Shown: positions 28,338 through 63,076, counted from the first letter of the stretch. The stretch is 64,000 bases of DNA from IMGVR_UViG_3300044641_009805:124001-188000; one strand, 5' to 3'. Made by a program: numbers and translations. Notes: generated by a model from the letters alone, not told the origin.

Positions 28338-30173
28338 ATGGCAATAAATGATTTAAAGAACTATCGTATTAGGACTTATCTAGCAAAAGATTTTGATTCT
28401 CTTCGAGCTCAGCTTGTTCAATACGCAAGGACTTATTACCCTGATAAGATACAAGATTTTTCTGAATCTTCTATGGGAGGAATGTTATTAGACTTAGCCG
28501 CCTATACAGGCGATGTGATGTCTTTCTACTTAGATCATCAATACAACGAATTAGATTACAACGCTGCGATTGAACCGCAAAACATAGAACGAGCTATCAG
28601 ATCTTCAGGGGTTAAAATAACGGGAGCTTCTCCTTCAATAGTTGATTTAACTTTTGTTATCGAAGTTCCATCATCGATAGTTTCTAACGCCATAGTTCCT
28701 TCTGCTGAAGCTCTACCGATCGTAAGGGCAAATTCTATCTTTACTTCTAACTCAGGAATAGACTTTACGTTGCTTTCAGACGTAGATTTTTCCAGAAAAA
28801 GATCAGATGGTACTTTTTTAGCTGATGTTCAAGTTGGAAAGATATCTGGGGATGGTACTCCTCTTAGCTTTGTCATGGTTTTAGATGGACAATGCATTTC
28901 TGGTAAACAAGAAAAAGAATCTTTTTCGTTAAGCGGAGAATTACCATTTAGGACGATTGAATTATCAAGAAGCAATGTCACGGAAATATTATCGGTGTTT
29001 GATAGCAAAGGTAACGTTTATTACGAAGTTAGTTCGTTGACAGATGATGTTGTCTATCGTAACGTATTGAATTTAGCTAGAGATTCTCAAGAAATATCTG
29101 AAGCTATAAAAGTAATACCAGCTCCGTATCGGTACATCACCAATGTTGATCTAAGCACCAGAAAAACCTATATGATCATGGGTGGAGGTTCAGACACCAG
29201 TCTTGAAGACGATGCGGTTCCTGATCCATCTGAGTTTGCAATTAGCTTTCCTTATTCGAAAACGTTCTCTAGAACAACAGTTAACCCTCTTCAAATGTTG
29301 AAGACGAGGACTTTGGGAGTGTATGCGCCAGAGTCTCAATTAACAGTGGTTTATAGATATGGCGGTGGACTATCTCACAACGTTCCTGCAAAGACTATCA
29401 ACACTATCACTAGTATGACAGTGGATTTTCCGCTAAATCCAAAGCTTTCAGTTATAAACGCAGTTAGAAATGGCATGGTCGTCACGAACAAGAAGGTGGC
29501 TTCAGGAGGAGAAGAAGCACCAGGCGTCGACGAGTTGAAATCCTTAATTCCTTCAGCAAGAAATGCTCAAGAAAGAATTGTGACAAGAGAAGATTTGCTT
29601 GCTAGGATCTATTCTATACCTTCTAACTTTGGTCGAGTATTTAGAGCTGCAGTTCGTTCAAATCCCAACAACCCTCTAGCGACTCAACTTTACGTTGTTT
29701 CAAGATCTGCAAATTCCACTTTAATAAATAGTCCTGATACGTTGAAAGAAAATCTTCGAAAATATATTGCCCCTTATCGTCTGGTGAATGATGCAATCGA
29801 TATATTAGACGCTTACATAGTCAATCTATCGATGATTTTCGAGGTCGTTGCCGATCCTTCCTTGAATAAACAAATTTTACTGCAAGAAATCTTGGTAAAG
29901 TTGATCGATCGTCTCAATATTAAGAATTTTTCTATAGATCAACCAATTGTCATCAACGATTTGCAGAATTTGATATATAACACCCCTGGTGTTATCGCTG
30001 TTACTAATATAGAATTCTTTAATTTAAACGGAAAGATAAACAATCTTCAATACAGCGAAAATTCTTTTGACGTAAAAATGCATCTTAGAAAAGGTATGTT
30101 ATATCCACCAGAAGGTGGAATATTCGAATTCAAATTTCCCAACGTAGACATAATTGGAAGGACTAGCATATAA
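28338..30173 (+). CDS. Baseplate wedge subunit (gp6/GpJ-like)
   Basis: KDFDSLRAQL, DFSESSMGGMLLDLAAYTGDVMSFYLD, YRYGGG, ASGGEE, AQERIVTREDL. Confidence 0.9.
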   Translation: MAINDLKNYRIRTYLAKDFDSLRAQLVQYARTYYPDKIQDFSESSMGGMLLDLAAYTGDVMSFYLDHQYNELDYNAAIEPQNIERAIRSSGVKITGASPSIVDLTFVIEVPSSIVSNAIVPSAEALPIVRANSIFTSNSGIDFTLLSDVDFSRKRSDGTFLADVQVGKISGDGTPLSFVMVLDGQCISGKQEKESFSLSGELPFRTIELSRSNVTEILSVFDSKGNVYYEVSSLTDDVVYRNVLNLARDSQEISEAIKVIPAPYRYITNVDLSTRKTYMIMGGGSDTSLEDDAVPDPSEFAISFPYSKTFSRTTVNPLQMLKTRTLGVYAPESQLTVVYRYGGGLSHNVPAKTINTITSMTVDFPLNPKLSVINAVRNGMVVTNKKVASGGEEAPGVDELKSLIPSARNAQERIVTREDLLARIYSIPSNFGRVFRAAVRSNPNNPLATQLYVVSRSANSTLINSPDTLKENLRKYIAPYRLVNDAIDILDAYIVNLSMIFEVVADPSLNKQILLQEILVKLIDRLNIKNFSIDQPIVINDLQNLIYNTPGVIAVTNIEFFNLNGKINNLQYSENSFDVKMHLRKGMLYPPEGGIFEFKFPNVDIIGRTSI

Positions 30174-31717
30174 TGTATAAAGTATTGTTAGCGGATAAAG
30201 ACGCTTATATTACTAACAGATTTGTTAGAAACGCAAGTACTTCGTCCATAAAAACTAGTTCAAATGTTGGCGCGGCTTCTACTTTAGATCTTTTTAAATT
30301 GTACGGATCTAATCTTGATGAGAATGGCAATCCAAGAAAAGAACTCTCAAGAATTCTCATTCATTTTGATCTGCAACCCTTAAAAGACCTAATATCGCAA
30401 AATAAGATAAACATTAATCATTCGTCTTTCAATTGCAAATTGCAACTATTTGATGTGTACGGAGGGCAAACAACTCCAAATAATTTCGACATCTCAGCTT
30501 ATCCTTTGTCCAGATCTTTTGATGAAGGAGAAGGAAGAGATGTAGTTTATTACTCTGATATTGATTACTGCAATTTCTTATCTTCATCTTTCTCTGAAGG
30601 ATCATGGTTTGTTACAGGATGTTCGTTGGCGGGTTATGCTGAATCAAGCTGCGATTATATAACATCATCAAATTTGTTGTCTATTTCTAGCTTTGAGTCT
30701 AAACAACATTTTGCTTCTGGAGAAGAAAATCTAGATTTAGATGTTACAACCATCGTGTCAGCTACTCTTTCAGGTGATTTGCCTGATAACGGATTTAGAA
30801 TTTCTTTCTCTAACGTTGAAGAAAACAACGCTTATTCTTACTTTGTTAAAAGGTTCGCTGCTAGAACGGCTTACAATTCTTCAAAACACCCACGAATGGT
30901 TATAAGATATAACGACTCGATTATTGATGATTCAAGGATATTAAGATTCGACACGACATCAACGATGTTTTTAAGAAATTATCGAGATGATCAACTTTCT
31001 AACATCTTGAGTGGATCTTCTTTATCGCATGTGACTGGTAGCAATTGTTTGTTGTTAAAGCTAAAGACAATGAGGTCTGATGGGAGTGGATCTTACTCAA
31101 TATATGCGACAGGATCTCAACATTTCGACGGCTTGAATTATTTTGCAGGATTATATTCTGCATCATTTGTGCTTCCACAATCGGACTCAATTTTATACGC
31201 TGAACTAGCTAAATCAGGTTCTGTTCTTTTCACTCCTATCTGGAGTTCATTAGATGAATCTGTAGTTTATTACACTGGATCTGACTTGTACGCTTATCCA
31301 CCCAACAGAAGTTCTGCTATACTTGATGGAAAAGAATATGTGATCACGACGACAGGATTACAAAACTTGCATAGGTCGAATGAAGACGTGATAGTTCGTC
31401 TTAACATATTCGATTATACTGCACCTTTTATAAAGTTAGTTAAAAAACCAATTAACTTGCCTGGGATAGTGTTAAAAAGAACTTATTATCAAGTAAGAGA
31501 TTTTTCGACAAACGAAGTAATAATTCCATTTGATGAAGTTTATAACTCAACAAGAGTGTCTAGTGACACCGACGGCATGTACTTTAACTTGGATATGTCT
31601 AGTTTACCGCTAGATAGAAGTTATGTAGTTGATATAATGGTTAACGTGATAGGGTACAAAAAAATCTATAAGGCTGTCTCAAATGTATTTAACGTTAGCA
31701 ACTCTCAAGTTTCGTGA
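30173..31717 (+). CDS. Baseplate-associated virion protein
   Basis: ADKDAYI, SRILIHFDL, HPRMVIRYND; position in the baseplate module. Confidence 0.6.
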   Translation: MYKVLLADKDAYITNRFVRNASTSSIKTSSNVGAASTLDLFKLYGSNLDENGNPRKELSRILIHFDLQPLKDLISQNKININHSSFNCKLQLFDVYGGQTTPNNFDISAYPLSRSFDEGEGRDVVYYSDIDYCNFLSSSFSEGSWFVTGCSLAGYAESSCDYITSSNLLSISSFESKQHFASGEENLDLDVTTIVSATLSGDLPDNGFRISFSNVEENNAYSYFVKRFAARTAYNSSKHPRMVIRYNDSIIDDSRILRFDTTSTMFLRNYRDDQLSNILSGSSLSHVTGSNCLLLKLKTMRSDGSGSYSIYATGSQHFDGLNYFAGLYSASFVLPQSDSILYAELAKSGSVLFTPIWSSLDESVVYYTGSDLYAYPPNRSSAILDGKEYVITTTGLQNLHRSNEDVIVRLNIFDYTAPFIKLVKKPINLPGIVLKRTYYQVRDFSTNEVIIPFDEVYNSTRVSSDTDGMYFNLDMSSLPLDRSYVVDIMVNVIGYKKIYKAVSNVFNVSNSQVS

Positions 31718-31731
31718 TGTAAGGCAAACAA

Positions 31732-34700
31732 ATGGCTAATTACAGTTTCACTCAGTACGTACCTTCTTTTATAAAGGCAGTTGGAGATAACAACAGATCT
31801 TACGTATTGAAGTTTGCAGATTTACCTGAATCTGACTCCAGCAACGAAAACTCATTTGCAAACGACATTCAGGGAACAGGATTAAAATCTACTCAGCAGC
31901 TCGACATAGACTGGTCAAAATTTGAAAATCATACTTTCTTTATGTCAGCGGAAGCTAAAGTTAACTTAGCTTTTGAGTTGATAATTAACTCTTATCCTTT
32001 CGACGGTAGTAAAGAAGAAATAGATTCATTTTTTTCGAACTTGACTGGATTTGAAAAATGGGTTTTTGATCAAATTCCGAAGTACAAAGGAGAGTTGCTT
32101 TTTTCAGGAACCCAGCTATCCGAAACGACTCCTGACAAAGGAACTTATATAGTCGTAAAAGACATCCCGGGATCGATGTTTCCATCACTTAACCCTGATG
32201 CGTTAGTAAAGTCTTCAGTTCTTAATCCAAAGAATGATAAGTCACTAAGCGTAGAAATGCAGCTTTTCATTCCAAGCATACAAACTGCAGGAACGCAAAT
32301 AGTCTTTCAAAAAATAAATGCCAGCAACAACCACGGAATATCTTTGCGATTGAATCCTACAACTTCGACAGATGAAGTTGAGGCACAGTTTGACGTGTTT
32401 TCAGGATCAGCTGCAATGACGGTTTCATCGCAAATTAAAAAAGGCGAATTTAATCATTTATGCGTGGTGTTGGATAAAGAATCTAACAACAATGTTTTAA
32501 GATTTTATAATAATGAAATTTTAAAAGCTACTTCTGATAGCATGTATTTAACCAATCTTGATATCGACTATAATGATTTTGTCATAGGTAGCGGAACGTC
32601 TTACAAGGTAGCTTCTACTATAGTCACCCCGCAACAGACGTTATCAGGGGTTCTTGATGAGTTAAGAGTTTTTCATAGCGTTAGAAGCGTGCTCCAACAA
32701 ACTTCTTACGCAAAAAAATCAATTTTTTCTACTCCTGATTTAAAGTTATATTATCGATTCAATGAACCAGCCCCTCCGCTGTCACCAATCAACAATGACG
32801 TAACGAACACGATCGTTCTTGATAGCTCAGGAAACTCTTTACATTCCTACGTTAGAAATTTCGAAGATTCTTTAAGGATTGACGCTGCTGCTGATACAAC
32901 AAGCAACATGACATATGAAAAGCTGTCGACTTGTCCGGTTCTATTCCCAGCCTATGCAGGAGTCGTTGCTTTAAATAATGATCTTTTAAACGAAGCTGCT
33001 GATTTTGATGCAGAAAATCCCAATTTGATAACGAAGTTAATTCCCAGACACTATCTTTTAGAAGGTGCTGCGTTAGAAGGGTTCAATACTGCGTTACAAA
33101 ATAACGGTTCTCAGTATTCAGGTACAGGAATTCCTGGACAAGGTAAGTTAAATAACGTTCAATTGTTGCTGTCTTTGCTTTATATTTGGGCAAAGTTTTT
33201 TGATGAAATTAAGTTGTTTCTTGACACGTTTAGCACAATCAAGTACGTCTCTTATGATACTAGAGAAAGTGCTCCTGATAATTTTCTTTTTGACATAGCG
33301 AAAAGCTATGGATTCTATATTCCTCCGCTGTTTGCCAATTCTACAGTCGAACAATACTTGCAGGGAGAAAATATCGATCCTCTATTTAAGAGCAATGAAT
33401 CTCTGTCTTTACAGCAAGTTCAAAATTCAATACTACGTAGAGTTCTAGTCAATTTACCGTCGGTCATACGTTCAAAAGGGACTCAACATAGCATAAAATC
33501 ATTTCTCAGAGCAGTAGGAATAGATCCAGACAGCAGCATGAGATTTAGAGAGTACGGTGGACCTACTTACAAAGTTCTATCAAAATCTAGAGAGCTGAAG
33601 TCTGACGTAACTACGATGATTAACTTTACCTCTTCTTCGTTAGTAACGTCTCAATACCTTTCAGGTTCTAGAATAGAGGTAGGAAAACCAAAAATCGCAG
33701 GAAATTATGTTCAAGATCCTTCATATGGATTTCACGGAATTTCTGATGACCCGAATGATGGGCTCTTTACTTCAGGTTCTTGGACTTTTGAGACCGCTGT
33801 CAAATACGGATCAATCAATTCTGGTGTTATATTATCAACGACACAATCTTTAGCTAGATTGTGCGTGACTGGTTCTGGCATACAAAATCCTGGATTGGTT
33901 GCAAATTTGGTTACTTACAACGATGACAATGATCCAAGAATTGATTTGTTTTTGCGGCCTGGCAATTCGACTTCTGCGCCTCTTTTCAAACTACGTTTGA
34001 ATTTAGATAAGTCTTCTATTTTCAATGGAGACGTGTGGAACGTTTCGTTCGGATGTATAAGGAATGATGAGATAGAATCTTTAGCTTCATCTTCTTATTA
34101 CATTCGAGCAGGATTTCAGAACGAAGGAGAAATTCAAGCATATTACACGACTTCATCTTACTTTTTTGAACTAGCTGGGATGGGATCTCCTGATGAAAAT
34201 GCTTTCAGAAGCCTTAATTCAACATTAAATGCTTCTGGAACTTTTTTGAGCGTAGGTTCCAATCAAGTAATTCCAGATGGAACTACTTCGACTTATCTTT
34301 ACCTTAACAACTCTTCAGTTGTTGCCGACGAAGCAGCTAGAAGCGTTGTCTTTGAAGGAAGGTTAGCTAAGACAAGATTTTGGTCAAAGTCATTTACCAC
34401 CAAAGAATGGTCGGAACACATACGAAACTATCAGTCTTTGGGTGTGTCTGATCCATCCAAAAACTACAATTACGTGTACACGGTATCAGGTTCTTTCGAA
34501 AAGCTAAGACTAGATTCTTTATCTAAACAATCGAATAGAACGGCTTCTGCTCCTGACGGAAGCATCACGTTCTTGGATTTCAGTGAAAATAACATGCACA
34601 TGTTGGGAACGGGATTTCCAACGGCCACTGACTTTTTCTTACCTGAAATTATTAGGTATTCACACTTGTCTTCGTACTATGATGAAGCGCTGTCTAACGA

Positions 34701-35232
34701 TAAGATAAGAGTTCGTGGATATCTAGAAGATTCTTTGATTGATGCAAACCCTTGGGCTTCGAGAGCGCCCGTTCATCAGATATCTAGATCGGAAAGCCCA
34801 ACAGATGATACTAGATTTTCAATCGATTTTTCTTTGGTTGATTCTTTAAACAATGACATAGTGAACATGTTCTCAACGTTTGAAGCGCTAGAGAATGCGA
34901 TAGGAAATCCTGATTTAGTCTATTCCCCTGATTATCCAGATCTAGAAACTTTGAGAAACGTGTACTTTAATCGTTTGAAAGAAAAACTAAATTTCAAGGC
35001 TTTTTTTGAGTTCTATAGTTGGTTTGATAATTCGATAAGCAATTTTATAGAACAGTTGATACCTAGAAAGACAGTGTATAAAGGTACTAACTTTATCGTA
35101 GAGTCTCACATGCTTGAAAGGCATAAGCAAGAGTATTATTCTAGCGAGATATATCTAGGCGAAAATGATCGCAATAGAATTAGAGACAATTTGTTGCTTC
35201 AACAAATAGCTGGAACGATAAGGAGATTCTAA
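31732..35232 (+). CDS. Large baseplate protein with LamG/concanavalin-like domains and a gp7/GpI-like segment
   Basis: FNHLCVV, SGVLDELRVF, LKLYYRFNE, VLDSSGN; NLPSVIRSKGTQHSIKSFLRAVGI. Confidence 0.75.
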   Translation: MANYSFTQYVPSFIKAVGDNNRSYVLKFADLPESDSSNENSFANDIQGTGLKSTQQLDIDWSKFENHTFFMSAEAKVNLAFELIINSYPFDGSKEEIDSFFSNLTGFEKWVFDQIPKYKGELLFSGTQLSETTPDKGTYIVVKDIPGSMFPSLNPDALVKSSVLNPKNDKSLSVEMQLFIPSIQTAGTQIVFQKINASNNHGISLRLNPTTSTDEVEAQFDVFSGSAAMTVSSQIKKGEFNHLCVVLDKESNNNVLRFYNNEILKATSDSMYLTNLDIDYNDFVIGSGTSYKVASTIVTPQQTLSGVLDELRVFHSVRSVLQQTSYAKKSIFSTPDLKLYYRFNEPAPPLSPINNDVTNTIVLDSSGNSLHSYVRNFEDSLRIDAAADTTSNMTYEKLSTCPVLFPAYAGVVALNNDLLNEAADFDAENPNLITKLIPRHYLLEGAALEGFNTALQNNGSQYSGTGIPGQGKLNNVQLLLSLLYIWAKFFDEIKLFLDTFSTIKYVSYDTRESAPDNFLFDIAKSYGFYIPPLFANSTVEQYLQGENIDPLFKSNESLSLQQVQNSILRRVLVNLPSVIRSKGTQHSIKSFLRAVGIDPDSSMRFREYGGPTYKVLSKSRELKSDVTTMINFTSSSLVTSQYLSGSRIEVGKPKIAGNYVQDPSYGFHGISDDPNDGLFTSGSWTFETAVKYGSINSGVILSTTQSLARLCVTGSGIQNPGLVANLVTYNDDNDPRIDLFLRPGNSTSAPLFKLRLNLDKSSIFNGDVWNVSFGCIRNDEIESLASSSYYIRAGFQNEGEIQAYYTTSSYFFELAGMGSPDENAFRSLNSTLNASGTFLSVGSNQVIPDGTTSTYLYLNNSSVVADEAARSVVFEGRLAKTRFWSKSFTTKEWSEHIRNYQSLGVSDPSKNYNYVYTVSGSFEKLRLDSLSKQSNRTASAPDGSITFLDFSENNMHMLGTGFPTATDFFLPEIIRYSHLSSYYDEALSNDKIRVRGYLEDSLIDANPWASRAPVHQISRSESPTDDTRFSIDFSLVDSLNNDIVNMFSTFEALENAIGNPDLVYSPDYPDLETLRNVYFNRLKEKLNFKAFFEFYSWFDNSISNFIEQLIPRKTVYKGTNFIVESHMLERHKQEYYSSEIYLGENDRNRIRDNLLLQQIAGTIRRF

Positions 35233-36128
35233 TGGGAAATGAAGTTAGCAAAGCTTTACAGCTATTGACACCCAAAAAAAATACTAATTTTTTCTATGGT
35301 TTCTTACCTAGAATTAATAAAGAATATTTTGATGATGGTCAGGGTGAAAGCAACGATCTAAAACTCAAGCCTTCGTCAACTGAATTCGTTTTAACTGGTT
35401 CGATGGATACATCTGCCATCGACGCTTTTAGACAAGGCGTAGAGATCACAAGGTCTCAACATTTTGACGCGGGAACTTCTTTAAAAATTCACGCAGGTGA
35501 ACCCGGAGGGGTCGTCAGAAAAAATTCTTATGGATATGATCGTAATTTTAGAAAAGATAATTTTTATAGCGATATTGATTATTTTGATCCTGTCGACTAC
35601 CTGACGTCAACTCGAGTTTTTTCATATCCTATTATTACTGGTGATAATGATGAAACTGAAAATTATAACTTCAACGGCGTAATTGAGCCTTTAACCATAA
35701 GAGCTCTAGTTTCGTTTTTTAGCATTGACGTTCCCTTCGAAGCTCACGACGTGAAAGCCAACCTAGAGGACGGCAACAGCACCATAATTCGATCTAATGA
35801 TAGAATTAAGACGGTTCGAGAAAGAAATGAGAACAGGATTGTTCCTTGGTTGGACATGATAGACATGGTGGGAGAAGTCAAGAAAATCCCAACGATGGGA
35901 TATTTTAACGACGATCGTACTTTTATTGCTCCGTTTAACGATCAAAAGTATAAGTTAGAATTATCATCAAACTTAGAAGGTACAATGCTTTTAGCCGCAA
36001 GACTGTTGAATGGGTCAACCGATAACTACGTTGCTGACGGGTACATATCTGCAACGGCAGGGTGGACGTACGATGACGTGACGGTTCATGGAACTGATTC
36101 GATTGCATTTGGAGGGTTTGGATACTAA
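35232..36128 (+). CDS. Virion structural protein, unknown function
   Basis: Coupled ORF within the baseplate module. Confidence 0.6.
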   Translation: MGNEVSKALQLLTPKKNTNFFYGFLPRINKEYFDDGQGESNDLKLKPSSTEFVLTGSMDTSAIDAFRQGVEITRSQHFDAGTSLKIHAGEPGGVVRKNSYGYDRNFRKDNFYSDIDYFDPVDYLTSTRVFSYPIITGDNDETENYNFNGVIEPLTIRALVSFFSIDVPFEAHDVKANLEDGNSTIIRSNDRIKTVRERNENRIVPWLDMIDMVGEVKKIPTMGYFNDDRTFIAPFNDQKYKLELSSNLEGTMLLAARLLNGSTDNYVADGYISATAGWTYDDVTVHGTDSIAFGGFGY

Positions 36129-40419: not shown

Positions 40420-40422
40420 TAT

Positions 40423-41019: not shown

Positions 41020-41043
41020 AAAGTTCCCCTTTTTATATAAGTA

Positions 41044-46080: not shown

Positions 46081-46095
46081 CAAGAGGAATCTAAC

Positions 46096-50316: not shown

Positions 50317-50379
50317 ACAATAATTCAGTTATTGGTTCTCAGCAAACGAAAATTATTGTGTTCGAAGATACGTAGTATT

Positions 50380-51555: not shown

Positions 51556-51570
51556 ACTGGAGAATAATTT

Positions 51571-52236
51571 ATGGCTCGTCTTTTTATCACACAAAGAGAA
51601 ATTAATTTCATTTCTGACATCACAAAAGAAGTGATAAAAGATGTGATCGGCCAAAAGATCTATTACTATCCTATCTCAGAAACTAAGACCAAGACTCATG
51701 AAGTTTATGCTGAAGCTATGCAAAAAATATTCGATAATCCAATCGTTATTGATGTTTTAGTAAGCAATGAATTTCAGATCGATACAAAGATAGATAAGTT
51801 TGGAGTAGACACTAATTTTAAATCAGAGGTTTACATCCAACATAGAGACATGATAGAAAAAGGTATTAATCCTGCAATCGGCGATTATTATTCTTTTAGC
51901 GATGTTTTTTATGAAATAACTGAATACAGATTCATGAGAAACATTTACGGACAGGCTGAAAACATTGACGGAGTCGCGTTGGTGGGACTCAGGGTACGTG
52001 ATAGTCAATTCAAGGCTCTTGTTAAAGGCCCGACTGGCATTGAGTACACCGATAAAGATGCTACGCAAACCACATTCGTACAGCAAAGAGGTGTTGAAGA
52101 AAATGCCGAAGGTCCGACAGCCGACGTTAGAGATTTGGTGAAGCAAGGGGTTCTTGACCCACCAATCTCAGGTCCCAGAGAAGTTTCCAGCAAAGGAGAT
52201 TCTACTGGTGCTGGTAATTCTTTTTATGATGAATGA
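51571..52236 (+). CDS. Neck / head-closure protein (gp14-like)
   Basis: GQKIYYY, EVYAEA, KFG, PAIGDY...FYEI; follows gp13. Confidence 0.7.
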   Translation: MARLFITQREINFISDITKEVIKDVIGQKIYYYPISETKTKTHEVYAEAMQKIFDNPIVIDVLVSNEFQIDTKIDKFGVDTNFKSEVYIQHRDMIEKGINPAIGDYYSFSDVFYEITEYRFMRNIYGQAENIDGVALVGLRVRDSQFKALVKGPTGIEYTDKDATQTTFVQQRGVEENAEGPTADVRDLVKQGVLDPPISGPREVSSKGDSTGAGNSFYDE

Positions 52237-53648: not shown

Positions 53649-56600
53649 ATGGCTGAACAAGTTTTTAGATCACCTAATTTTTTTGAAAGAGAAATTGAGC
53701 TTAAGGCACCGCCTCCGTCAGGACCCGTCGGAGTTCCTGCAGGCGTGATTGGTACTTCTAAAAAAGGACCGGCTTTCGTACCAGTTGCTGTTTCTAACTT
53801 TAACGAATTCGTAAGCATTTTTGGCGATCTAGATCCAAAAAAGTTTGGTCCCTATGCCGTCAATGAGTTTTTGAAAAATAGAACAGCGTTAACGTATATG
53901 CGCGTCCTAGGCGGAGGCTCTAATCGTTCTTTAAGCGACGTGCAAACGACGCTTATAACTGGTAAGGTAAAGAATGCCGGATTTAAGACGATCGGGACTA
54001 AAACTGATTTAACCGAGGATCAATACAAACGACATGTCGGGGGTGTGCAGTTCATCGTAGCTGATCACACGATCGATACGGCGGATGAACCAGCAGGAAT
54101 GCCTATGTTCACTGACAATGATTCTAGGACTCAAACCAGCAACGTTTCGCTTGTTAGAGGCGTCGTTCTTATGGCATCTGGCGCTAGAATGCTTGTTTTA
54201 GACGGAGATCAAAGCATAGGAACCAGCTTCGATGGTGTGGTTTCTGTTGATGATGAAGGAGCTGTAAAGAGCGGAAAAGTCAAGTTAGTCATTTCATCCA
54301 CTTTAGGATCAGCTTTCTCTTATGATGATGGGAAAGCAGGATTGAAGGTTTATACAGCATCTCTTAACCCTACTAGCGCAGATTACTTTGGTAAAGTGTT
54401 AAATAAGGATCCTGAAAAATTTGCGCAGTATCAGCACTTGCTATACACGGACTTTGCTGTAGATGATGAAGTTGCCTCGGTTCTTGATAATGATAAGGTA
54501 GCAATATTATCAGGATCAAGCTTTAATAGTCCAGCATCTGGAGATCCATCACTTCATTTCAGCGGAGCATTTGGTTCATTCGATACTAGATTCACGGCAC
54601 CCAAAACTCCGTACTTTATTTCTCAGCCTTTCGGAACGTCAGAATATGATTTGTTTGCCGTTGAATCTATCGACGATGGAGAATACGCAAACAGTCTTTA
54701 CAAGGTGTCGATCAGCAATCTTAAGGTTTCTGAGAATGACGCATATGATTATGGAACATTCAATCTACAAATTCGCGATTTTAATGATACGGACGTAAAT
54801 CCAGTTATCATAGAAGAGTTTGTAAATTGTTCACTCGATCCCGACGCCGACAACTATGTGGCAAAGTTAGTAGGAGATCGCAAAGTGACTTATGACTTTG
54901 ATCAAGACATATTGGTAGAAAGACGCATCGTTACGACAGGAAAGTACCAAAATATTTCAAAGTTTGTCAGAGTAGTCATGTCTCCCGCTGTGGAAGAGAA
55001 AAAAATCCCTGCAAAATCTTTGCCTTTCGGTTTCAGAGGGTTTGAGCTTCTGAAGACAAACGATAATTTGAAAGATTCTGTTCCAACAAGAAATAGACTA
55101 TGGGGATCAGTAGGTACCGGAGGCTCAAGTTTAGCAAGTTCTATTCTTCCTCCTGTACCTTACAGATATAAGGTAACCCGCGGCGCAGTTTCATCCGCTG
55201 CAAACTGGAGTGGCGAACCTGGACCTCTTGAGTCTACAAATCCAGCTTATTACTGGGGCGTGAAGTTTGAAAGGAATACAGAACCCTTAAACAACAACCT
55301 GAGTGAAGAAAAGAACGTTCTCATTGAAAGCTTCACAAAGTTCATGGGAATCAAAAAGCTAGATGTTCTAGTCACGGGTTCTGGTGCTGACACTTTCAAT
55401 AACAACAAATTCAGCCTTTCCAAGGTCGCTTTTGCAAATGGATCTATAGCTGAGTTAACTGGCACAGTTAGAACTCACATGAGAGAAGCAGCATATATCA
55501 GAAATGCCAAGGTTGATCCATCAACTTACACGATCTACGATTCAGGATTCGGAGATAGAATCACTTTAGCGAGCTTACTATCAAATGGAGAATCCTATCA
55601 GTTCAACAGATTCTCAACGTTTGCAAAGTTCTCAACATTCATGTGCGGAGGATTCGACGGATTGAATATCCTAGACCCAGCTGCCCGTCGAATGAATGAT
55701 AAAGCAACTTCATTTGAAACTCCTAAGGGAGCAGCCTCAACCACATATACATCACCAGGTCTTGCTTCTAACGTGGCTGGAACTGGAGTTGACAATAACT
55801 CAGTTAGTTCTTATGTCACAGCAATTGACGTAATGACTGATCCTCTGCAGGTCAATGTGAATCTGCTTGCCCTCCCAGGTATTCGTGAGGATTATCTCAC
55901 GAATTACACATCAAAGAAAGTAAGAGATTATGGATTGGCCATGTACATCATGGACATACCAAATTATGACGACAACAGTGATAGAATCTATGATGATTCT
56001 ACGAACAGAATCAACATCGAAAATACAGCAGCTATCTTCGAAGAAAGAACGTTCGATAACAACTACGTCGCGACCTACTTCCCCAACGTCTATGTCAATG
56101 ATACGACGAACAGCAGATACGTGAAAGTTCCTGCGTCTGTTGCAGCTCTCGGTGCATTAGGGTTCAACGACTTTATTGCATATCCTTGGTTTGCACCTGC
56201 AGGATTCAACCGCGCCGCGCTTGACTTCGTTAACAACGTAGAGGTCAGATTGAACGTCTCGGATAGAGATCGTCTATACGACGCTAGAATCAATCCTATA
56301 GCGACATTCCCAAGATTGGGATTCGTTATCTACGGACAGAAGACGTTACAAATAAGAAAGTCTGCTCTTGATAGAGTTAATGTGAGACGTTTGCTCTTAG
56401 AGGTTAAGAGATTAATCATCAACATAGCTAACAGGATCATATTTGAACAGAACACACCAGCCGTCAGAAACAAGTTTGTGGCGGATGCAATTCTTCAACT
56501 CAGCCTTATTCAGACCCAGGCAGGCATTGAGGCCTACCAGGTCATCATGAATGAGACGAACAACACACAAGAGGACATCGATCTCAATCGTTTGAATGGT

Positions 56601-56684
56601 CGAATCGTCGTCGTCCCAACGAGAGCAATTGAATTTATTGCGATCGATTTCATCGTAACAAACGCCGGCGTCGAATTTGTCTGA
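53649..56684 (+). CDS. Tail sheath protein 1 (gp18-like)
   Basis: SPNFFEREI, GTSKKGPAFVP, GGFDG, PWFAPAGFNR, INPIATF, YGQKTLQ, LDRVNVRRLL, IEFIAIDF. Confidence 0.95.
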   Translation: MAEQVFRSPNFFEREIELKAPPPSGPVGVPAGVIGTSKKGPAFVPVAVSNFNEFVSIFGDLDPKKFGPYAVNEFLKNRTALTYMRVLGGGSNRSLSDVQTTLITGKVKNAGFKTIGTKTDLTEDQYKRHVGGVQFIVADHTIDTADEPAGMPMFTDNDSRTQTSNVSLVRGVVLMASGARMLVLDGDQSIGTSFDGVVSVDDEGAVKSGKVKLVISSTLGSAFSYDDGKAGLKVYTASLNPTSADYFGKVLNKDPEKFAQYQHLLYTDFAVDDEVASVLDNDKVAILSGSSFNSPASGDPSLHFSGAFGSFDTRFTAPKTPYFISQPFGTSEYDLFAVESIDDGEYANSLYKVSISNLKVSENDAYDYGTFNLQIRDFNDTDVNPVIIEEFVNCSLDPDADNYVAKLVGDRKVTYDFDQDILVERRIVTTGKYQNISKFVRVVMSPAVEEKKIPAKSLPFGFRGFELLKTNDNLKDSVPTRNRLWGSVGTGGSSLASSILPPVPYRYKVTRGAVSSAANWSGEPGPLESTNPAYYWGVKFERNTEPLNNNLSEEKNVLIESFTKFMGIKKLDVLVTGSGADTFNNNKFSLSKVAFANGSIAELTGTVRTHMREAAYIRNAKVDPSTYTIYDSGFGDRITLASLLSNGESYQFNRFSTFAKFSTFMCGGFDGLNILDPAARRMNDKATSFETPKGAASTTYTSPGLASNVAGTGVDNNSVSSYVTAIDVMTDPLQVNVNLLALPGIREDYLTNYTSKKVRDYGLAMYIMDIPNYDDNSDRIYDDSTNRINIENTAAIFEERTFDNNYVATYFPNVYVNDTTNSRYVKVPASVAALGALGFNDFIAYPWFAPAGFNRAALDFVNNVEVRLNVSDRDRLYDARINPIATFPRLGFVIYGQKTLQIRKSALDRVNVRRLLLEVKRLIINIANRIIFEQNTPAVRNKFVADAILQLSLIQTQAGIEAYQVIMNETNNTQEDIDLNRLNGRIVVVPTRAIEFIAIDFIVTNAGVEFV

Positions 56685-56703
56685 TGCAAACGTCGGGAAT
56701 CTT

Positions 56704-56711
56704 ATACTTAT
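56704..56711 (+). promoter_or_regulatory. Putative late promoter ATACTTAT
   Basis: Same motif; AGGAG SD follows. Confidence 0.55.
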
Positions 56712-56736
56712 CATGCAAAGCGTAGGAGCGATATAA

Positions 56737-59700
56737 ATGGCACAGCTCAAATTTGGAAGCGCAGGAGTAACAACAAGAGAAATAGACTTAACGGGCCCCG
56801 TCGAAACAGGACCGACGGGGGTCCCCGCGGGGGTCATCGGCACGTCATTAAAGGGACCAGCATTCGTACCACTAACTTATGGAACGCTCAAGGACTTCTT
56901 CGCGAAGTTCGGTGAGAGCGATTCTAAGAAGTTTGGACCGATAGCTGTCTCTGAATGGCTGAGCCGTTCAACCGCAGTGACTTACCTTAGAGTCTTAGGC
57001 GTTGGTGATGGAAAGCAACGTCTTAAAACTGGAACAACCGCTGGTGAAGTTAACAATGCAGGATTCGTCGTAGGCGAAGAACAACCTGCAGAAGACGGAA
57101 CTTTATCACCGAATCCATATGCTGTTTCAGGAGGACCACTGGGTAGAACATACTTCTTAGGATGTTTTATGTCAGAGTCCGTAGGGTCAACTTTCTTAAG
57201 TGACGCTGGTCTTCAAGGAACAAGAAGGGTTAACTCTCCTTCTGTCTTATCAGCTTCAGTTCCAATCGTCAGAGGCGTGTTGATGGCTCCTTCAGGAGTC
57301 GTCTTGCGCTTGTCGGCAAGCTATGCTACGTCCGCCGTTCCTGGTTCTGCAACACCTGCAACACCCGCAAACCTGTTTGGAGCTTCGGTGGGAACGATCG
57401 TTCTTTCTGCTTCCAACGCACCTTCCAAACAAGAGTTCACGATGTTGCTTTACGGGCACAAAGGAACAGACGTTGCGTATCCAAACGTTCTAACTGCATC
57501 TTTTGACGTTAACTCAGCGAACCACATATCCAAGGTTCTTAACACAGATCCTTATAAGATGCAGCAAGCAGGTCACTATCTTGCAGCAAGCTGGGATATA
57601 CATCCTTCGTTGGCAGTCATTACTGGAACAGGATTCTTACCAGTAGACGCAGGATATAACTGTGTATCTAGCTTAACACACTCACTTGGATCAGAGAATT
57701 CGGTCTTCTTGTTAACTTCGTCTTTGGCAAGAAACTCAGGATCACAGACTGTACCCAATTACGAGTCCTTCCGCGATAGATTCTCCAATGCCAAGACCCC
57801 TTGGGTTATCTCTCAAAAGTTCGGCGGAAAACCAGTTAACTTGTTCAGATTCCACGCTCTAGACTCTGGAGCCAACATCTCTAACAAGGTCAAGATTGGA
57901 ATCGCCAACATCACTCCTTCAAATGCGGCTAATTACAAATACGGTTCATTCAACGTCGTTCTTCGTCGCATGGATGATACGGATATCGAACCTAAGGTTT
58001 TGGAGAGCTTTAATGGAGTCAACCTCGATCCATCTTCTGATCGTTACATCGGAAAAGTAATGGGCGACATAAATGCCTACTACGATTTTGATCGTGATGA
58101 CTCAAGCCAAAAATTGGTCATTGAAGGAAATTACACATTAAGATCCAGACACGTTAGAGTTGAGGTTTCTGATGAAGTGATAGATCTATCAGTCGATCCA
58201 ACTGCATTGCCAATGGGTTTCAGAGGTATTGCTCACCTCATGACATCAGGATCAGCTATCTTTAATGTGGATAATGCGGCATTAATAGACGGCGGATTGA
58301 TCCATAACGTGGTTGAACCACCTCTTCCATTCAGAAAGAACATTTTTGATGGCGTCGGTGCTCAAGCTCAAGAAAATTCTAGGTACTACTGGGGTGCAAA
58401 GTTCGAACACGTCGTAGATGTGAACGACCAAAACAGCAACGTAACACCAGACAAATCATTCAACAGCTTCACAAGCTACTTCCCGAATTTCTCGACTGCA
58501 TTCATGAACTTCGTGGTGGGTGACAACGCTGGTGCTGCGACGACTGACGAAAATGGAATCGTAGATTCTGACAAATTCTGTAACAACTTGTTCTCTCTAG
58601 AGCATGTTCAGATCAGAACAGGTTCTAACGGTACCGTTGAGCAAGCTGACGATTGGAAACATGCGACATACGTCAGAAATGGTGATATACAACCAGACGA
58701 TGGTGCCAAGACAAGAGCAGTGAAGGTCGACGATCTATCATTCTCGCTGAACAGAAGATTCCTTAAGTTCTCTTTGATCATGCAGGGTGGATTTGATGGC
58801 GTCAATATCTTTGATGAGGATGAACATCAGATCAATAATGCTGCTGTCACAGCAGACATGAACGACGCTGATAGAGGTCGCGAAAAGGGTCCCAACGTAT
58901 CCGCTTATCTCAAGGCCCTCGAGGTCATGAAGAACACGACCAATGTTGATATTCAGCTTCTCGCGATACCCGGCATCAGAACGCCTGTCGTTACAGATGC
59001 TGCAATCACGGCGACTGAAGAGCGTTTCGATGCTCTGTACATTATGGACATGGAACAGGTAGACAAGGACGGAAACCTGATCGATATCACGGGAGTCGTC
59101 AAACCTTCAGTCACGGAAACAATCCTGCAGCATAAGGCACGTAACCTCAACACGTCCTTCGCGGCAGCTTACTTCCCAGACGTTCTAATGAGAGATCCTT
59201 CAAAGCAATCGAACACAGTGGTCGTTCCACCTTCGGTCGTGGTCCTCGGAGCTCTAGCCTTGAATGACTCACTAGGATATCCTTGGTTTGCTCCAGCAGG
59301 TCAAACCCGCGGCGCTCTCCCCACGACTCTTGAGACAAGCATACAGCTCAAGGATCAGGACCTAGATTCGCTTTACGATGAGGACATCAACCCCTTGTAC
59401 GCTCAAATTATAAACGCACAAGGCGGATTGAACCCACGCGGCGGAGTGGTTGTTTGGGGTCAAAAGACGATGCTACAAGCTGCTTCTGCTCTTGATAGAA
59501 TCAACGTCCGCCGTCTCCTCATCGACGTTCGTCGTCAGGTTCGCGAGATTGCTCAAACGATCATCTTCGAGCCCAACCGCGAAGCAACCCTCGCAAGGTT
59601 CTCTGCAGCTGTCACACCACGTCTCCAGAGAATCCAAGCCCTCGCCGGTCTCGATCGTTTCAGAGTCATCATCGATTCTTCTACGACCACACAGGCCGAC

Positions 59701-59808
59701 GTCGAGAACAACACGGTCAGAGGTAAGATATTCCTGCAGCCAACAAAGACAATCGAGTTCGTCTCACTCGACTTCGTCGTTGCAAATAACCTGCAGTCAG
59801 TGACCTGA
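56737..59808 (+). CDS. Tail sheath protein 2 (gp18-like)
   Basis: SAGVTTREID, KGPAFVP, PWFAPAGQTRG, WGQKT, LDRINVRRLL, IEFVSLDF. Confidence 0.95.
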   Translation: MAQLKFGSAGVTTREIDLTGPVETGPTGVPAGVIGTSLKGPAFVPLTYGTLKDFFAKFGESDSKKFGPIAVSEWLSRSTAVTYLRVLGVGDGKQRLKTGTTAGEVNNAGFVVGEEQPAEDGTLSPNPYAVSGGPLGRTYFLGCFMSESVGSTFLSDAGLQGTRRVNSPSVLSASVPIVRGVLMAPSGVVLRLSASYATSAVPGSATPATPANLFGASVGTIVLSASNAPSKQEFTMLLYGHKGTDVAYPNVLTASFDVNSANHISKVLNTDPYKMQQAGHYLAASWDIHPSLAVITGTGFLPVDAGYNCVSSLTHSLGSENSVFLLTSSLARNSGSQTVPNYESFRDRFSNAKTPWVISQKFGGKPVNLFRFHALDSGANISNKVKIGIANITPSNAANYKYGSFNVVLRRMDDTDIEPKVLESFNGVNLDPSSDRYIGKVMGDINAYYDFDRDDSSQKLVIEGNYTLRSRHVRVEVSDEVIDLSVDPTALPMGFRGIAHLMTSGSAIFNVDNAALIDGGLIHNVVEPPLPFRKNIFDGVGAQAQENSRYYWGAKFEHVVDVNDQNSNVTPDKSFNSFTSYFPNFSTAFMNFVVGDNAGAATTDENGIVDSDKFCNNLFSLEHVQIRTGSNGTVEQADDWKHATYVRNGDIQPDDGAKTRAVKVDDLSFSLNRRFLKFSLIMQGGFDGVNIFDEDEHQINNAAVTADMNDADRGREKGPNVSAYLKALEVMKNTTNVDIQLLAIPGIRTPVVTDAAITATEERFDALYIMDMEQVDKDGNLIDITGVVKPSVTETILQHKARNLNTSFAAAYFPDVLMRDPSKQSNTVVVPPSVVVLGALALNDSLGYPWFAPAGQTRGALPTTLETSIQLKDQDLDSLYDEDINPLYAQIINAQGGLNPRGGVVVWGQKTMLQAASALDRINVRRLLIDVRRQVREIAQTIIFEPNREATLARFSAAVTPRLQRIQALAGLDRFRVIIDSSTTTQADVENNTVRGKIFLQPTKTIEFVSLDFVVANNLQSVT

Positions 59809-59828
59809 TAACCTCTGTCAAAACAGAC

Positions 59829-59864
59829 AGGAACCGCCTCTTTTAACGGGGCGGTTTCTTTTTT
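59829..59864 (+). terminator. Intrinsic terminator after sheath 2
   Basis: AGGAACCGCCTC-ttttaac-GGGGCGGTTTCT followed by a T run. Confidence 0.85.
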
Positions 59865-59983
59865 GTCGAGGGCATTAATTAATGTCAACAATTGCACGTG
59901 GTAAAACAATCAAGGACATATTGCAAAATATTCCCATGACATCTGATGATGATTCTTACATGTCAGATGTCTGAAGCAGGATT

Positions 59984-59991
59984 ATAGTTAT
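59984..59991 (+). promoter_or_regulatory. Putative late promoter ATAGTTAT
   Basis: Motif variant; the leader resembles that of sheath 2. Confidence 0.5.
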
Positions 59992-60010
59992 GGAACGTAG
60001 AGCGATATAG

Positions 60011-63000
60011 ATGGCTAAATTCGAATTTTCAAGCGCAGGAATATCAGCACAAGAGATCGGGACGATTGGTCCTGTCAAGACCCAACCGAGTGGTCTTTCG
60101 GCTGGCGTCATTGGAACTTCAAATAACGGTCCCGCTTTCGTTCCCTTTACGTTAGGATCTCTCACTGATTTTATCGACAAGTTTGGGACCATCGACGGCA
60201 AAAAGTTTGGTCCCCTTGCGGTCGCAGAGTGGATGAGAAATGCAAACTCTATCACCTACATTCGCATCCTCGGAGCAGGCGACGGAAATAAACGCCTGAC
60301 GTCTGGCGAGGTCACCAACGCAGGTTTCACTGTCGGAGAAGAACAACCTATCAACTCTAGTTCCTTAGGGTCCAATCCATATGCAAATCTCAATGGTCCT
60401 CTAGGCAGGACTTACTTTTTGGGATGCTTCATGTCAGAATCTGCAGGATCAGTCGTGTTCAGTTCGGCTGGGCTGCAAGGAACAGGCAGCATCAATGGGA
60501 TAACGGCAGGAGCCGTTCCCATCATCAGAGGAGTTCTGATGGCACCTTCGGGGGTGATCTTACGTTTATCTTCATCAGGAGGAGGATACGATTCATCGGC
60601 TCCCTTATCAAACTTTGTAGCCGATGAATCAACGGCTCACGGTACGACTTTAGGCTCCATCTCGCTTAGAAAAGATCAAACGCCATCACAGGAATTCGTT
60701 CTGCTGATGAATGGTCACAAAGGCACGACCTCAGCTCCTAATTTCATCACGGCTTCCTTCGATATGTTCTCCACCAACTACATATCGAACGTATTCAATC
60801 TCACGGCTTCATTGATACAAGAAAAAGGTCACTACCTTGCAGCTCATTGGGACATCTACCCCTCTCACGCTGTCGTGACTGGTACGGGAGTCGTATCTGC
60901 TGGCGCCGACGTGGCTTCAGATTCAAATAGAATACTAGACACTGAGAGATCAGTCTTTTTGATCACGTCTTCGTTGTCTAGAAACGTTGGATCGACGACG
61001 GTCCCAAATTATGAATCTTTCAGAGATCGATTCACTCACGCATCCACGCCTTGGATAATTTCTCAAAAACTTTTAGGAAAGCACGAAAATCTTTTCAAGC
61101 TCCATGCCCTTGACGCGGGGGCGAACGTATCCAACAGCTACAAGGTGACAATTCATGACGTACGTCCTAAGTCAGAAGGAAGTCCATACAAGTACGGTTC
61201 GTTCAGCCTGTCTGTGAGGTTGATAGATGATCCAGATAACGAAGACTCTAAACCGCTTGAAACCTTCAACGACCTGACGCTGGATCCATCTTCTGCCACT
61301 TACATCTGTAAAGTGATAGGAGACGTAAACGTCTACTACGATTTTGACAGACCTCCTGACGACCAAAGGATGGTGATCGAAGGCAATTATCCCTTAAAGT
61401 CTAGATACGTTAGAGTTGAAGTATCTGAAGAGGTTCATAACGCTACTCTGAATCCTGCGGCCATCCCGATGGGGTCCCGAGGAATTTCACACATAGTTAC
61501 TTCCGGCTCGGCTCCGCTAGCTCCATTGGGCGGCTCGGATATTCTACCTCTGGTCGATCAATACTACCTGCGAAATTCCGTGGTTCCTCCTCTACCAATG
61601 AGGCTAAACAACAAGGCAGCAGGTAACAACACGGACCCCCCGACGAAGAAGCCTTGGGGACCTATATTCGTTCACTCAAGTCCATTCGACTCGAACGATT
61701 TGCCAAACTCAAATCTCAATAAATCTTTCAACGCTTTTGCGCTTCACTATCCTGACCACTCGACGACAACTCTAAACTTTTCCGTGAGAGACAACGAGGG
61801 AACGCCCGACTCTACCACGAATGGGATATTGGACGCCGATAGGTTCTGTAACAACCTATTCACTTTAGAAAATGTCAAGGTGTTGACCGGTAGCAGCGGA
61901 ATCATCGAGTGGGGCTCTGCCGAGTATGTTCGTCACGGCTTCGTCGCGGTCGATGATGATGCAAAGACACGAGGGATCAACGTCTCTGATCTTCTATTGA
62001 AGAAAAACAGAGACTATCTAAGCTTTAATGTGATGTTCCAAGGAGGATTCGACGGGATCAACATCTTCGACTCTGATGAAGCTGCCATCAATGACGTCGC
62101 CGTCAGAGGAGACATGGAGGACATTGCACGAGGCGGATTGAACGGTTCAGCCGTGGTCTCTCACAGAAAAGCGATAGACATCATCAAGAACACAGTCAAT
62201 GCGGACATCGGCGTCATGGCCATCCCTGGAATAAGAGAACGCGTGATCACTGACGTCGCCGTGCAGGCGGCGGAAGAAAGAATGGACACTCTCTATATCA
62301 TGGACATAGAACAGTACGATTCAGGCTCAAATCCCATGTCCATGTCGGCTCTAGGCAAGTCCAACGCACCCTCAACGTCATTGACCATTGCGGCTCTTAA
62401 AGAACGCGGCGTGAACTCATCCTATGCAGCCGCATACTACCCCGACGTGATAATAACCCCTGATCAATTGCCTGATCAGGAGATAATCGTCCCACCCTCC
62501 GTGGCCGTCCTCGGCGCCATCTCACTCAATGACTCTGTCGGAGCTCCATGGTTCGCTCCCGCCGGCATGACCCGAGGCCGTCTCACAACGGCCCTACAAC
62601 CCGTGATCAACTTCGACGAACCCACGATCGATAACCTGTACATCAACAACATAAATCCACTCTACGCGACGACAAACATAAAACAACTATCCCCAGCCCA
62701 AACGTCAGGCGTCGTCATCTGGGGTCAAAAGACGCTGCTGCTATCGACAGAATCTTCTCTAGGCAGAATAGCCGTCCGCAGGCTTCTCATCGACGTACGC
62801 AAGGCCGTCAGACAAATCGCGCTACAATTCCTCTTTGAACCAAACGTAGAGAGAGTGTCAACCGTCTTCGCCTCACAGATCACAGAATACCTGTCGTCCG
62901 TCCGCGCCCGCAACGGCCTCCAATCCTTCAAGGTGAACATAGAATCACCCCTAAAATCTAGACAAAACGTCGAAAACAACTTGCTCAAGGGCAAAATCTA

Positions 63001-63076
63001 CCTCCAACCCCCAAAGACCCTTGAATTCGTCTCACTGGATTTCATCATCTCGAACGGTCTACAGTCCGAGATTTGA
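60011..63076 (+). CDS. Tail sheath protein 3 (gp18-like, closest to sheath 2)
   Basis: SAGISAQEI, NGPAFVP, PWFAPAGMTRG, WGQKTL, IAVRRLL, LEFVSLDF. Confidence 0.93.
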   Translation: MAKFEFSSAGISAQEIGTIGPVKTQPSGLSAGVIGTSNNGPAFVPFTLGSLTDFIDKFGTIDGKKFGPLAVAEWMRNANSITYIRILGAGDGNKRLTSGEVTNAGFTVGEEQPINSSSLGSNPYANLNGPLGRTYFLGCFMSESAGSVVFSSAGLQGTGSINGITAGAVPIIRGVLMAPSGVILRLSSSGGGYDSSAPLSNFVADESTAHGTTLGSISLRKDQTPSQEFVLLMNGHKGTTSAPNFITASFDMFSTNYISNVFNLTASLIQEKGHYLAAHWDIYPSHAVVTGTGVVSAGADVASDSNRILDTERSVFLITSSLSRNVGSTTVPNYESFRDRFTHASTPWIISQKLLGKHENLFKLHALDAGANVSNSYKVTIHDVRPKSEGSPYKYGSFSLSVRLIDDPDNEDSKPLETFNDLTLDPSSATYICKVIGDVNVYYDFDRPPDDQRMVIEGNYPLKSRYVRVEVSEEVHNATLNPAAIPMGSRGISHIVTSGSAPLAPLGGSDILPLVDQYYLRNSVVPPLPMRLNNKAAGNNTDPPTKKPWGPIFVHSSPFDSNDLPNSNLNKSFNAFALHYPDHSTTTLNFSVRDNEGTPDSTTNGILDADRFCNNLFTLENVKVLTGSSGIIEWGSAEYVRHGFVAVDDDAKTRGINVSDLLLKKNRDYLSFNVMFQGGFDGINIFDSDEAAINDVAVRGDMEDIARGGLNGSAVVSHRKAIDIIKNTVNADIGVMAIPGIRERVITDVAVQAAEERMDTLYIMDIEQYDSGSNPMSMSALGKSNAPSTSLTIAALKERGVNSSYAAAYYPDVIITPDQLPDQEIIVPPSVAVLGAISLNDSVGAPWFAPAGMTRGRLTTALQPVINFDEPTIDNLYINNINPLYATTNIKQLSPAQTSGVVIWGQKTLLLSTESSLGRIAVRRLLIDVRKAVRQIALQFLFEPNVERVSTVFASQITEYLSSVRARNGLQSFKVNIESPLKSRQNVENNLLKGKIYLQPPKTLEFVSLDFIISNGLQSEI

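Follow-up and report, generated by a model that had tools for sequence, protein, structure and literature searches.

Why should one short tripeptide recur in virion proteins between which no homology can be detected? This question is raised by a stretch of 64,000 nucleotides (bases 124001-188000 of the 278,435-bp IMG/VR record IMGVR_UViG_3300044641_009805, completeness 84% according to CheckV), here called the window, with positions counted from its first letter. Its source is a distant T4-like myovirus from an uncultured clade with genomes of about 290 kb (284-298 kb in the complete relatives). An earlier note on this DNA had proposed that [S/T]-G-S and S-A-S are convergently enriched in exposed structural proteins as acceptor sites for glycosyltransferases of the phage. 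Here, we show that the enrichment of [S/T]-G-S is real, strong and lineage-specific, and that the tripeptide is under selection in probably exposed parts of virion proteins. In our judgement it is with about even probability a glycosylation acceptor motif, serving cytoplasmic O-glycosylation of virion subunits and read by a conserved pair of family 4 glycosyltransferases (GT4). To our knowledge, few systems are described in which phage enzymes glycosylate the virion, and in none of them is a sequon defined.

Enrichment of [S/T]-G-S in virion proteins

Open reading frames (ORFs) were called genome-wide and the motif expectation was computed from each protein's own composition. Between 22.5 and 64 kb composition predicts 19.2 occurrences of [S/T]-G-S, and 65 are found. 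Elsewhere in the 278-kb genome there are 76 against 57.4, and this smaller excess can be traced to four virion-type proteins (the capsid protein, the neighbour of a gp4-like head-completion gene, a repeat fibre and a small repeat protein), after whose removal 53 motifs are left against 52.9 expected. The enrichment of structural over non-structural ORFs holds in comparison with composition-shuffled sequences. Moreover, the order of residues matters: in the ten proteins picked out by the earlier reader TGS occurs 26 times against 5.3 and SGS 32 times against 8.6, which places them at ranks 2 and 3 among all tripeptides, whereas TSG, GTS, GST, STG, SGT, SSG and GSS stay near expectation. The recurrence of [S/T]-G-S in virion proteins is in this way confirmed, but S-A-S, proposed alongside it, is not enriched (9 against 7.3; T-A-S 6 against 5.1). 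Rarity in the enzymes encoded at 2.5-22 kb had also been noticed; it is only roughly correct, as the sugar island located there has 7 motifs against 3.2. The supposed scarcity in tube and neck proteins applies to the tube and to two of three neck or tail-completion proteins, all without any motif, but not to the third, which has two.

A chance or composition artefact of fibres rich in Ser, Gly and Thr, of repeats and of paralogues would have some foundation in the fibre-like protein at 43109, which alone gives 19 of the 65 sites via its internal repeats, and in the paralogues, which share sites. In a reduced set, with 43109 and a collagen-like protein dropped and only one paralogue per family retained, there are nevertheless 30 motifs against 8.8 (p 2e-8). 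Local shuffles in windows of 15-60 amino acids (aa) give a mean of about 9.7 and a maximum of 23 in 1000 for these 30, and dipeptide-preserving shuffles leave 64 observed against 37.9 (z 5.7), or 30 against 16.1 (z 4.5) in the reduced set; neither type of shuffle ever reached the observed count. As the permuted tripeptides are at expectation and hundreds of relatives as well as two cultured phages show the excess too, such an artefact is hardly credible. Gly/Ser linkers or low complexity were rejected too, because GSG, SGG and GGS are unenriched and even shuffles in 15-aa windows fall short of the count. A motif at the level of DNA was likewise rejected: the nine underlying bases use many codons in background proportions, so the signal resides in the protein. 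Hydrophobic residues occupy positions -3 to -1 and +3 of the motif with frequencies of 0.47-0.56 (background 0.33), and the usual context is hydrophobic residues, [S/T]-G-S and again a hydrophobic residue.

The motif-bearing proteins are listed below, with observed against expected numbers for the protein and for its family.

30173..31717, plus strand: 514-aa baseplate/fibre-module protein; six against 0.78, all at residues 280-370; family 20 against 2.8, two homologues carrying 9 and 5
31732..35232, plus strand: 1166-aa protein with a concanavalin-like lectin domain (PF13385); five against 1.4; family 55 against 9.0
36128..38986, plus strand: 952-aa protein; six against 1.7; family 80 against 20.2
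38980..40419, plus strand: 479-aa protein; three against 0.7; family 16 against 3.3
43109..44866, plus strand: 585-aa fibre-like protein in which an internal repeat of about 123 aa occurs three times; nineteen against 4.0; family of more than 1000 metagenomic homologues 1673 against 427
44884..47286, plus strand: two paralogous baseplate-type proteins (44884 and 46096; 398 and 396 aa, 63% identical); five each against 0.9 and 1.0; family 234 against 55
53649..63076, plus strand: three tandem sheath paralogues (phrog_23; starts 53649, 56737 and 60011; 1011, 1023 and 1021 aa); 2, 3 and 4 motifs at residues 158-771; family of 96 non-redundant clade sheaths 402 against 109
genome 86442-88328, upstream of the window: gp23-like major capsid protein; four motifs at residues 153-212; family 15 against 4.8

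These proteins fall into eight families (the fibre, four baseplate/fibre proteins, the baseplate paralogues, the sheath and the capsid), each of which is enriched 3-7x across its metagenomic relatives. A hidden shared domain was considered as the common cause and rejected, because BLASTP reveals only the two known paralogue groups and profile-profile comparison with hhalign gives a probability below 3% in all 28 pairs. This means that the enrichment arose in families mutually without detectable homology, and that the earlier description of the carriers as non-homologous was correct.

Within the families conservation and turnover are found together. In those of 36128, 31732, 38980 and 30173 every homologue carries 3-14 motifs (1-3 expected), few alignment columns are conserved and many sites are singletons. 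In three of four families compared in this respect, retention of the motif in homologues is 2-3x that of same-composition tripeptides (0.35-0.55 vs 0.16-0.18). Lineage-specific sites with a steadily high count per protein fit selection on the number of motifs as well as on their position. Among the 12 sequences of the 36128 family, 8-10 retain the sites at residues 527, 720 and 910, and many further sites are confined to a single sequence. In the 44884/46096 family each of four of the five query sites recurs in 28-42 of 49 homologues, with the motif present at other columns in 14-24. The capsid protein of three out of four clade relatives has 3-5 sites, at partly different positions, and that of the fourth has none. 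At conserved sites position 1 is Ser or Thr in 75-92% and Asp or Asn in 0-8%, a tally biased by the choice of columns for carrying the motif; Gly follows in 84-95% and Ser at position 3 in 70-79%. The sites are thus both inherited and convergent: the convergence that had been postulated exists between families without detectable homology, but within families many sites are inherited.

Concerning their location, the 96 clade sheaths show a ratio of 4.24x in the middle part (10-70% of the length). The ratio falls to 0.08x in the N-terminal 10% and to 1.5x in the C-terminal 30%, the part that matches the sheath profile. The conserved core of the sheath lacks the motif; by analogy with T4 gp18, the middle presumably comprises the outer domains. 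The window's sheath paralogues are mutually 28-52% identical and about 350 aa longer than gp18. IMG/VR contains more than 595 related sheath genes. The capsid sites at residues 153-212 lie in a stretch that is poorly matched in T4 gp23. In a predicted model of 44884 (predicted local distance difference test, pLDDT, 88; predicted template-modelling score, pTM, 0.91) all five sites are in strand-adjacent loops, with about 57% of the model estimated to be loop. The fold search gave a single significant match, to a baseplate chain of the siphophage JBD30 (8rk3_K), a type of component unexpected in a T4-like baseplate, and both paralogues share a near-invariant R-F-H-S-A-S-x-G-K stretch at residues 79-87. 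The AlphaFold monomer model of 43109 was poor (pLDDT 60) and was kept out of the fold search; tblastn of this protein against cultured phages gave no match and a search of PDB sequences nothing useful.

Two further repeat proteins of the genome are rich in the motif. One (261364-263373; 669 aa; 9 against 1.3) has 36-aa repeats of the D-L-G-V-S-G-S-L-T-V-A-G type and adjoins a gp5-like lysozyme gene, and the other (44439-44951; 170 aa; 5 against 1.0) is composed almost wholly of similar rungs.

The phylogenetic extent of the trait appears to be narrow. In five genomes of the window clade ORFs of at least 400 aa contain 2.1-3.0x the expected number (permuted tripeptides 1.2-1.4x). Flavobacterium phage immuto reaches 2.43x (permuted 1.14x), with nine proteins at p<0.01 and the sheath among them, and Microcystis phage Mel-JY01 reaches 3.30x (permuted 1.01x) with one collagen-like protein set aside. 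In both phages the motif has the same flanks, and the enriched proteins are encoded downstream of gp25/gp6 as in the window. Of the immuto proteins, the sheath (KNV73_gp041) has 7 motifs, a 373-aa protein (135075-136196) has 12 and a 1053-aa protein (97658-100819) has 26. None of nine other large phages (T4, S-SZBM1, KVP40, PAU, HTVC008M, phiKZ, S-SSM7, Aeh1 and P-SSM2) has an order-specific excess; a Paraglaciecola virus was left out since it offered too few structural proteins in the region compared. The virion proteins of T4 contain 8 motifs against 12.6, the baseplate/fibre module of a cyanophage 29 against 20 with permuted tripeptides equally common, and the whole genomes of P-SSM2, KVP40, PAU, HTVC008M, phiKZ, S-SSM7 and Aeh1 are without order-specific excess.

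Sugar island and GT4 cassette

Upstream of the structural block the window encodes a sugar island (2.5-22.2 kb, 21 ORFs), followed by a late sigma gene.

2542..4470, plus strand: 642-aa soluble protein with a GT2 domain at residues 322-443 (PF00535) and an N-terminal domain of about 300 aa; conserved island end
4467..6947, plus strand: dTDP-sugar genes for an RmlA-like nucleotidyltransferase, an RmlD-like reductase and a 4,6-dehydratase/epimerase (PF00483, PF04321, PF01370/PF16363)
6931..11680, plus strand: variable middle with GT2 (6931), GT4-like (8027 and 9831) and GT2 (10697) genes and two family-less ORFs (Pfam)
13670..16362, plus strand: amino-sugar genes for a Polysacc_synt_2 dehydratase, a DegT aminotransferase and a GNAT acetyltransferase (PF02719, PF01041, PF13302)
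18003..18935, plus strand: UDP-glucose/GDP-mannose dehydrogenase (PF03721, PF00984)
18968..22248, plus strand: PD-(D/E)XK nuclease (18968-19786), GT4 (19844-21091) and GT4 (21049-22248) (Pfam; PF00534 at genome 144408 and 145814)
22531..23316, plus strand: gp55-like late sigma factor (phrog_234), directly 3' of the GT4 pair

The phage thus encodes its own glycosyltransferases, with at least eight GT2/GT4 genes in the window. If the island is compared with that of the complete relative G017 (125310-150016), both ends are shared (the 642-aa GT2 protein on one side, nuclease-GT4-GT4 and sigma on the other) and the middle is almost entirely different, with few or no homologues of 6931..11680. Such conserved ends with a swapped middle resemble the architecture of surface-glycan loci of the serotype type. 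Membrane segments were predicted in none of the 21 ORFs, and no flippase, polymerase or priming transferase was found among them, which favours a cytoplasmic acceptor.

Candidate protein glycosyltransferases are the two GT4 enzymes at 19844 and 21049, both of which retain an E-G-x-G-L-P-x-L-E-A motif. The 642-aa protein was rejected as the key enzyme because, although clade members conserve it, the motif-bearing phages immuto and Mel-JY01 lack it. Full-length homologues with 52-72% identity are found in 21 of 40 related records, including all three complete ones, and the family comprises viruses only; of the named PDB entries, the Listeria rhamnosyltransferase RmlT matches its GT2 domain best (E 4e-4).

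The nuclease-GT4-GT4 cassette occurs with the same gene order in G017, immuto (48008-51927) and Mel-JY01 (81375-86302), and is present in G001 as well; the GT4 pair of immuto is gp181/gp180. Its adjacency to the late sigma gene is conserved in the window clade, where homologues of the first GT4 (19844) were found in 15 of 21 records, exactly the 15 with a late sigma gene and all three complete genomes among them. By lineage, all three bearing the cassette are enriched in the motif and none of the nine without it (Fisher p 0.0045, the three lineages being related). Of the nine comparison phages, all unenriched, eight have no GT2/GT4 match over the Pfam cut-off; in the ninth, P-SSM2, the GT2/GT4 genes are unrelated to the window's pair. 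The co-occurrence with glycosyltransferases that had been anticipated therefore concerns one conserved GT4 pair in related lineages, not glycosyltransferases generally.

The obvious alternative acceptor is DNA. Digested DNA of immuto yielded canonical dA, dC and dT plus only formyl-preQ1 (PMC10516641), i.e. no glycosylated base, so its transferases are not seen to act on DNA. In G017, which has the island, no thymidylate-synthase-family gene able to make hydroxymethyl pyrimidines was found.

The island of immuto (L321, 46500-61000) is compact, with 12 kb that encode the nuclease, GT4, GT4, a GT2, WecE-like aminotransferases and a methyltransferase, further a mannosyltransferase, a gene annotated as "pilin glycosylation protein", an epimerase and another glycosyltransferase. 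A homologue of the window's DegT aminotransferase is present there. Adjoining the window's island is the gene of a Ser-rich, family-less 397-aa protein (575-1768, minus strand) which also occurs in immuto and has homologues at most 10 kb from the fibre gene in 14 related loci.

Acceptor motif, structural turn or other signal

According to the reading that we favour, hydrophobic-[S/T]-G-S-hydrophobic would be kept by selection at strand-loop junctions in exposed virion domains of related aquatic T4-like myoviruses (the window clade, immuto and Mel-JY01). Cytoplasmic O-glycosylation would act on folded or folding virion subunits, the soluble GT4 pair (19844, 21049) putatively attaching the first sugar to one or the other of the two hydroxyls of the motif, and the island's variable transferases and sugar-nucleotide genes would extend the glycan to a coat that differs between phages. 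It is possible, and put forward here tentatively, that [S/T]-G-S is a true O-glycosylation sequon read by the GT4 pair, by which fibres, baseplate, sheath and capsid are coated with a glycan that varies through swaps of the island's middle in a serotype-like manner. It would then be the first sequon defined for a phage, common to hundreds of uncultured aquatic jumbo phages and two cultured ones. Sites predictable from a three-residue motif would allow glycosylated phages to be recognised in metagenomes, would explain why large sugar islands are kept by a widespread group of aquatic phages and would supply a soluble enzyme-and-tag pair for glycoengineering. Should the motif be unmodified, a lineage- and order-specific tripeptide in eight families that are unrelated by detection would still need an explanation.

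Several points speak against an acceptor motif read by the GT4 pair. The sugar on the motif is deduced from sequence, and for most bacterial O-glycosyltransferases described so far there is no strict sequon (PMC12645811). The non-virion proteins of the phage do not avoid the motif but contain it at the expected number. By similarity of sheath, tube and gp6 the three enriched lineages are mutually closest, so that the association with the cassette amounts to little more than one evolutionary event and may reflect co-inheritance. Furthermore, six clade records are enriched without a detectable GT4 pair, including G016 (87% complete; 157 against 67). In these six the late sigma gene was undetected as well, even with the PHROG profile, which means that the cassette region may be missing and the records uninformative. 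For this reason G016 and G013 were rejected as glycosyltransferase-free counter-examples; they show no GT2/GT4 match, yet sugar epimerases are present and G016 has a GT8. Finally, a tight Gly turn with hydrophobic strand flanks also fits a purely structural element, and in the repeats of 43109 (about 120 aa) the motif marks the most conserved columns.

The last two observations lead to the main rival, in which [S/T]-G-S is an unmodified Gly turn or bulge, capped by Ser or Thr, that closes beta strands in the kinds of domain from which this lineage builds its fibres, baseplate and decoration domains, and that was inherited and multiplied by domain duplication. Ser/Thr-Gly ST-turns are universal in beta proteins and exchange readily with Asp/Asn. 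As in these turns a small hydroxyl residue is followed by Gly at the strand end, the flanks are hydrophobic, Gly is well conserved, and some sites are kept in more than 80% of homologues. Unlike ST-turns in general, the window motif is lineage-specific and order-specific, requires Ser at position 3 and rarely has the usual stand-ins Asp/Asn at position 1 (in columns selected for the motif). A turn of this kind would also have to be multiplied in eight families mutually without detectable homology, and to show no excess elsewhere, whether in the sheath and capsid of T4, which are homologues, or in the baseplate/fibre modules of T4 and a cyanophage. In addition, there is turnover of many sites with a persistently high number per protein, and the conserved sheath core is without motif. 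We consider this explanation rather unlikely. A recogniser other than a glycosyltransferase (another modification enzyme, an assembly chaperone or a decoration protein), with the island serving e.g. the host envelope, appears to us still less probable. The pattern of selection says that the motif matters but not why, and there are several family-less ORFs in or beside the island as well as the Ser-rich protein that recurs near fibre genes. On the other side, no kinase or modification enzyme tracking the trait was seen, although no systematic search was made for one, the GT4 cassette is the only gene set seen to track it, and the island is devoid of export or lipid-carrier genes.

If the motif is a glycosylation acceptor, the known systems are alike in logic but differ in enzyme family, residue or site position, or are without a sequon. 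In agreement with sequon-directed cytoplasmic glycosylation, the short motif is enriched beyond composition and in the putative targets only. Mycobacteriophage virion glycans are described, as far as the summary in PMC12619734 goes, on the C-terminal ends of capsid and tail-tube subunits (Freeman et al. 2023). As in the system summarised there, the virion proteins would receive their sugars in the cytoplasm from phage-encoded glycosyltransferases, and the particle would have a glycan surface; unlike it, the window's sites are internal, number dozens over fibre, baseplate, sheath and capsid with none in the tube, and follow a defined tripeptide. With the HMW1C-like N-glycosyltransferases the phage system would have in common a soluble cytoplasmic enzyme that reads a three-residue sequon at many sites of large beta-rich surface proteins; however, those belong to GT41 and modify Asn in N-x-S/T, whereas here the candidates are GT4 and the linkage would be through Ser/Thr of [S/T]-G-S. 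The autotransporter heptosyltransferases AAH/TibC recognise a strand-loop-strand element. Similarly, the acceptor Ser/Thr would be part of a short loop joining short strands in a repetitive beta fold, a context like that observed for the phage motif, but Pfam scans of the island, in which the AAH/TibC family was not searched for, gave no heptose pathway, and the island makes dTDP-/UDP-type sugars.

In contrast with GtfA/GtfB, where one partner is catalytic and the other a degenerate substrate-binding protein, both window GT4s keep E-x7-E, and the S-A/V/E-S dipeptide repeats of the GtfA/GtfB substrates have no counterpart, SAS and TAS being at expectation. Searches of PDB sequences with the pair returned generic GT4 enzymes and a chlorovirus transferase, but no entry named GtfA or GtfB. 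The glycosylation motif of the Lactobacillus S-layer is SASSAS, from which the window differs by its unenriched S-A-S. Flagellin islands are similar in that sugar-nucleotide genes and soluble transferases are clustered and exposed domains of a polymerising surface protein are targeted, and the window's amino-sugar genes resemble those for protein-linked sugars. Flagellin glycosylation systems, however, have no recognised sequon (PMC12645811), and the Pfam scans of the island revealed no enzyme of the Maf type.

Remaining features of the window and genome

Besides the motif-bearing proteins and the island, the window contains the following genes of the structural block.

27837 and 28338: gp25-like and gp6-like baseplate wedge proteins
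30173-47286: several large proteins without PHROG family
47687-48664: collagen-like fibre protein (23% Gly, 16% Thr, runs of G-P-T triplets)
after the collagen-like fibre and before the sheaths: neck proteins and a gp15-like protein
63143: tail tube protein

The collagen-like protein resembles BclA of Bacillus spores, a collagen-like protein that carries rhamnose, and genes for a dTDP-rhamnose-type pathway are present in the same phage.

Promoter motifs were compared for a sign that the island is expressed together with the late genes. In the 64-kb window there is one copy of the T4 late promoter TATAAATA against 4.6 expected. Since it is rare despite the gp55-like sigma factor, the late promoter of this lineage must differ. 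A weak candidate is CTTATA, which is found upstream of some sheath and island genes (10 genes against 4.6 expected).

A second sugar cluster (genome 233939-239676, i.e. 109939-115676 in window coordinates) consists of two epimerase/dehydratase genes adjoining a gene of the thymidylate-synthase family. The trio is shared by G007 (84017-88490) and missing from the complete G017; it could be a DNA base-modification module. In G016 (L091:10238-13765) a DnaE-type DNA polymerase III alpha, a GMP reductase/IMPDH, a thymidine kinase and ThyX are encoded close together, a replication and nucleotide gene set that is unusual among T4-like phages. Moraphages, which are aquatic jumbo phages of 200-307 kb (PMC12619734), agree with the window clade, if traits alone are compared, in the T4-like structural core, the genome size of about 300 kb, the core glycosyltransferases and the aquatic source.

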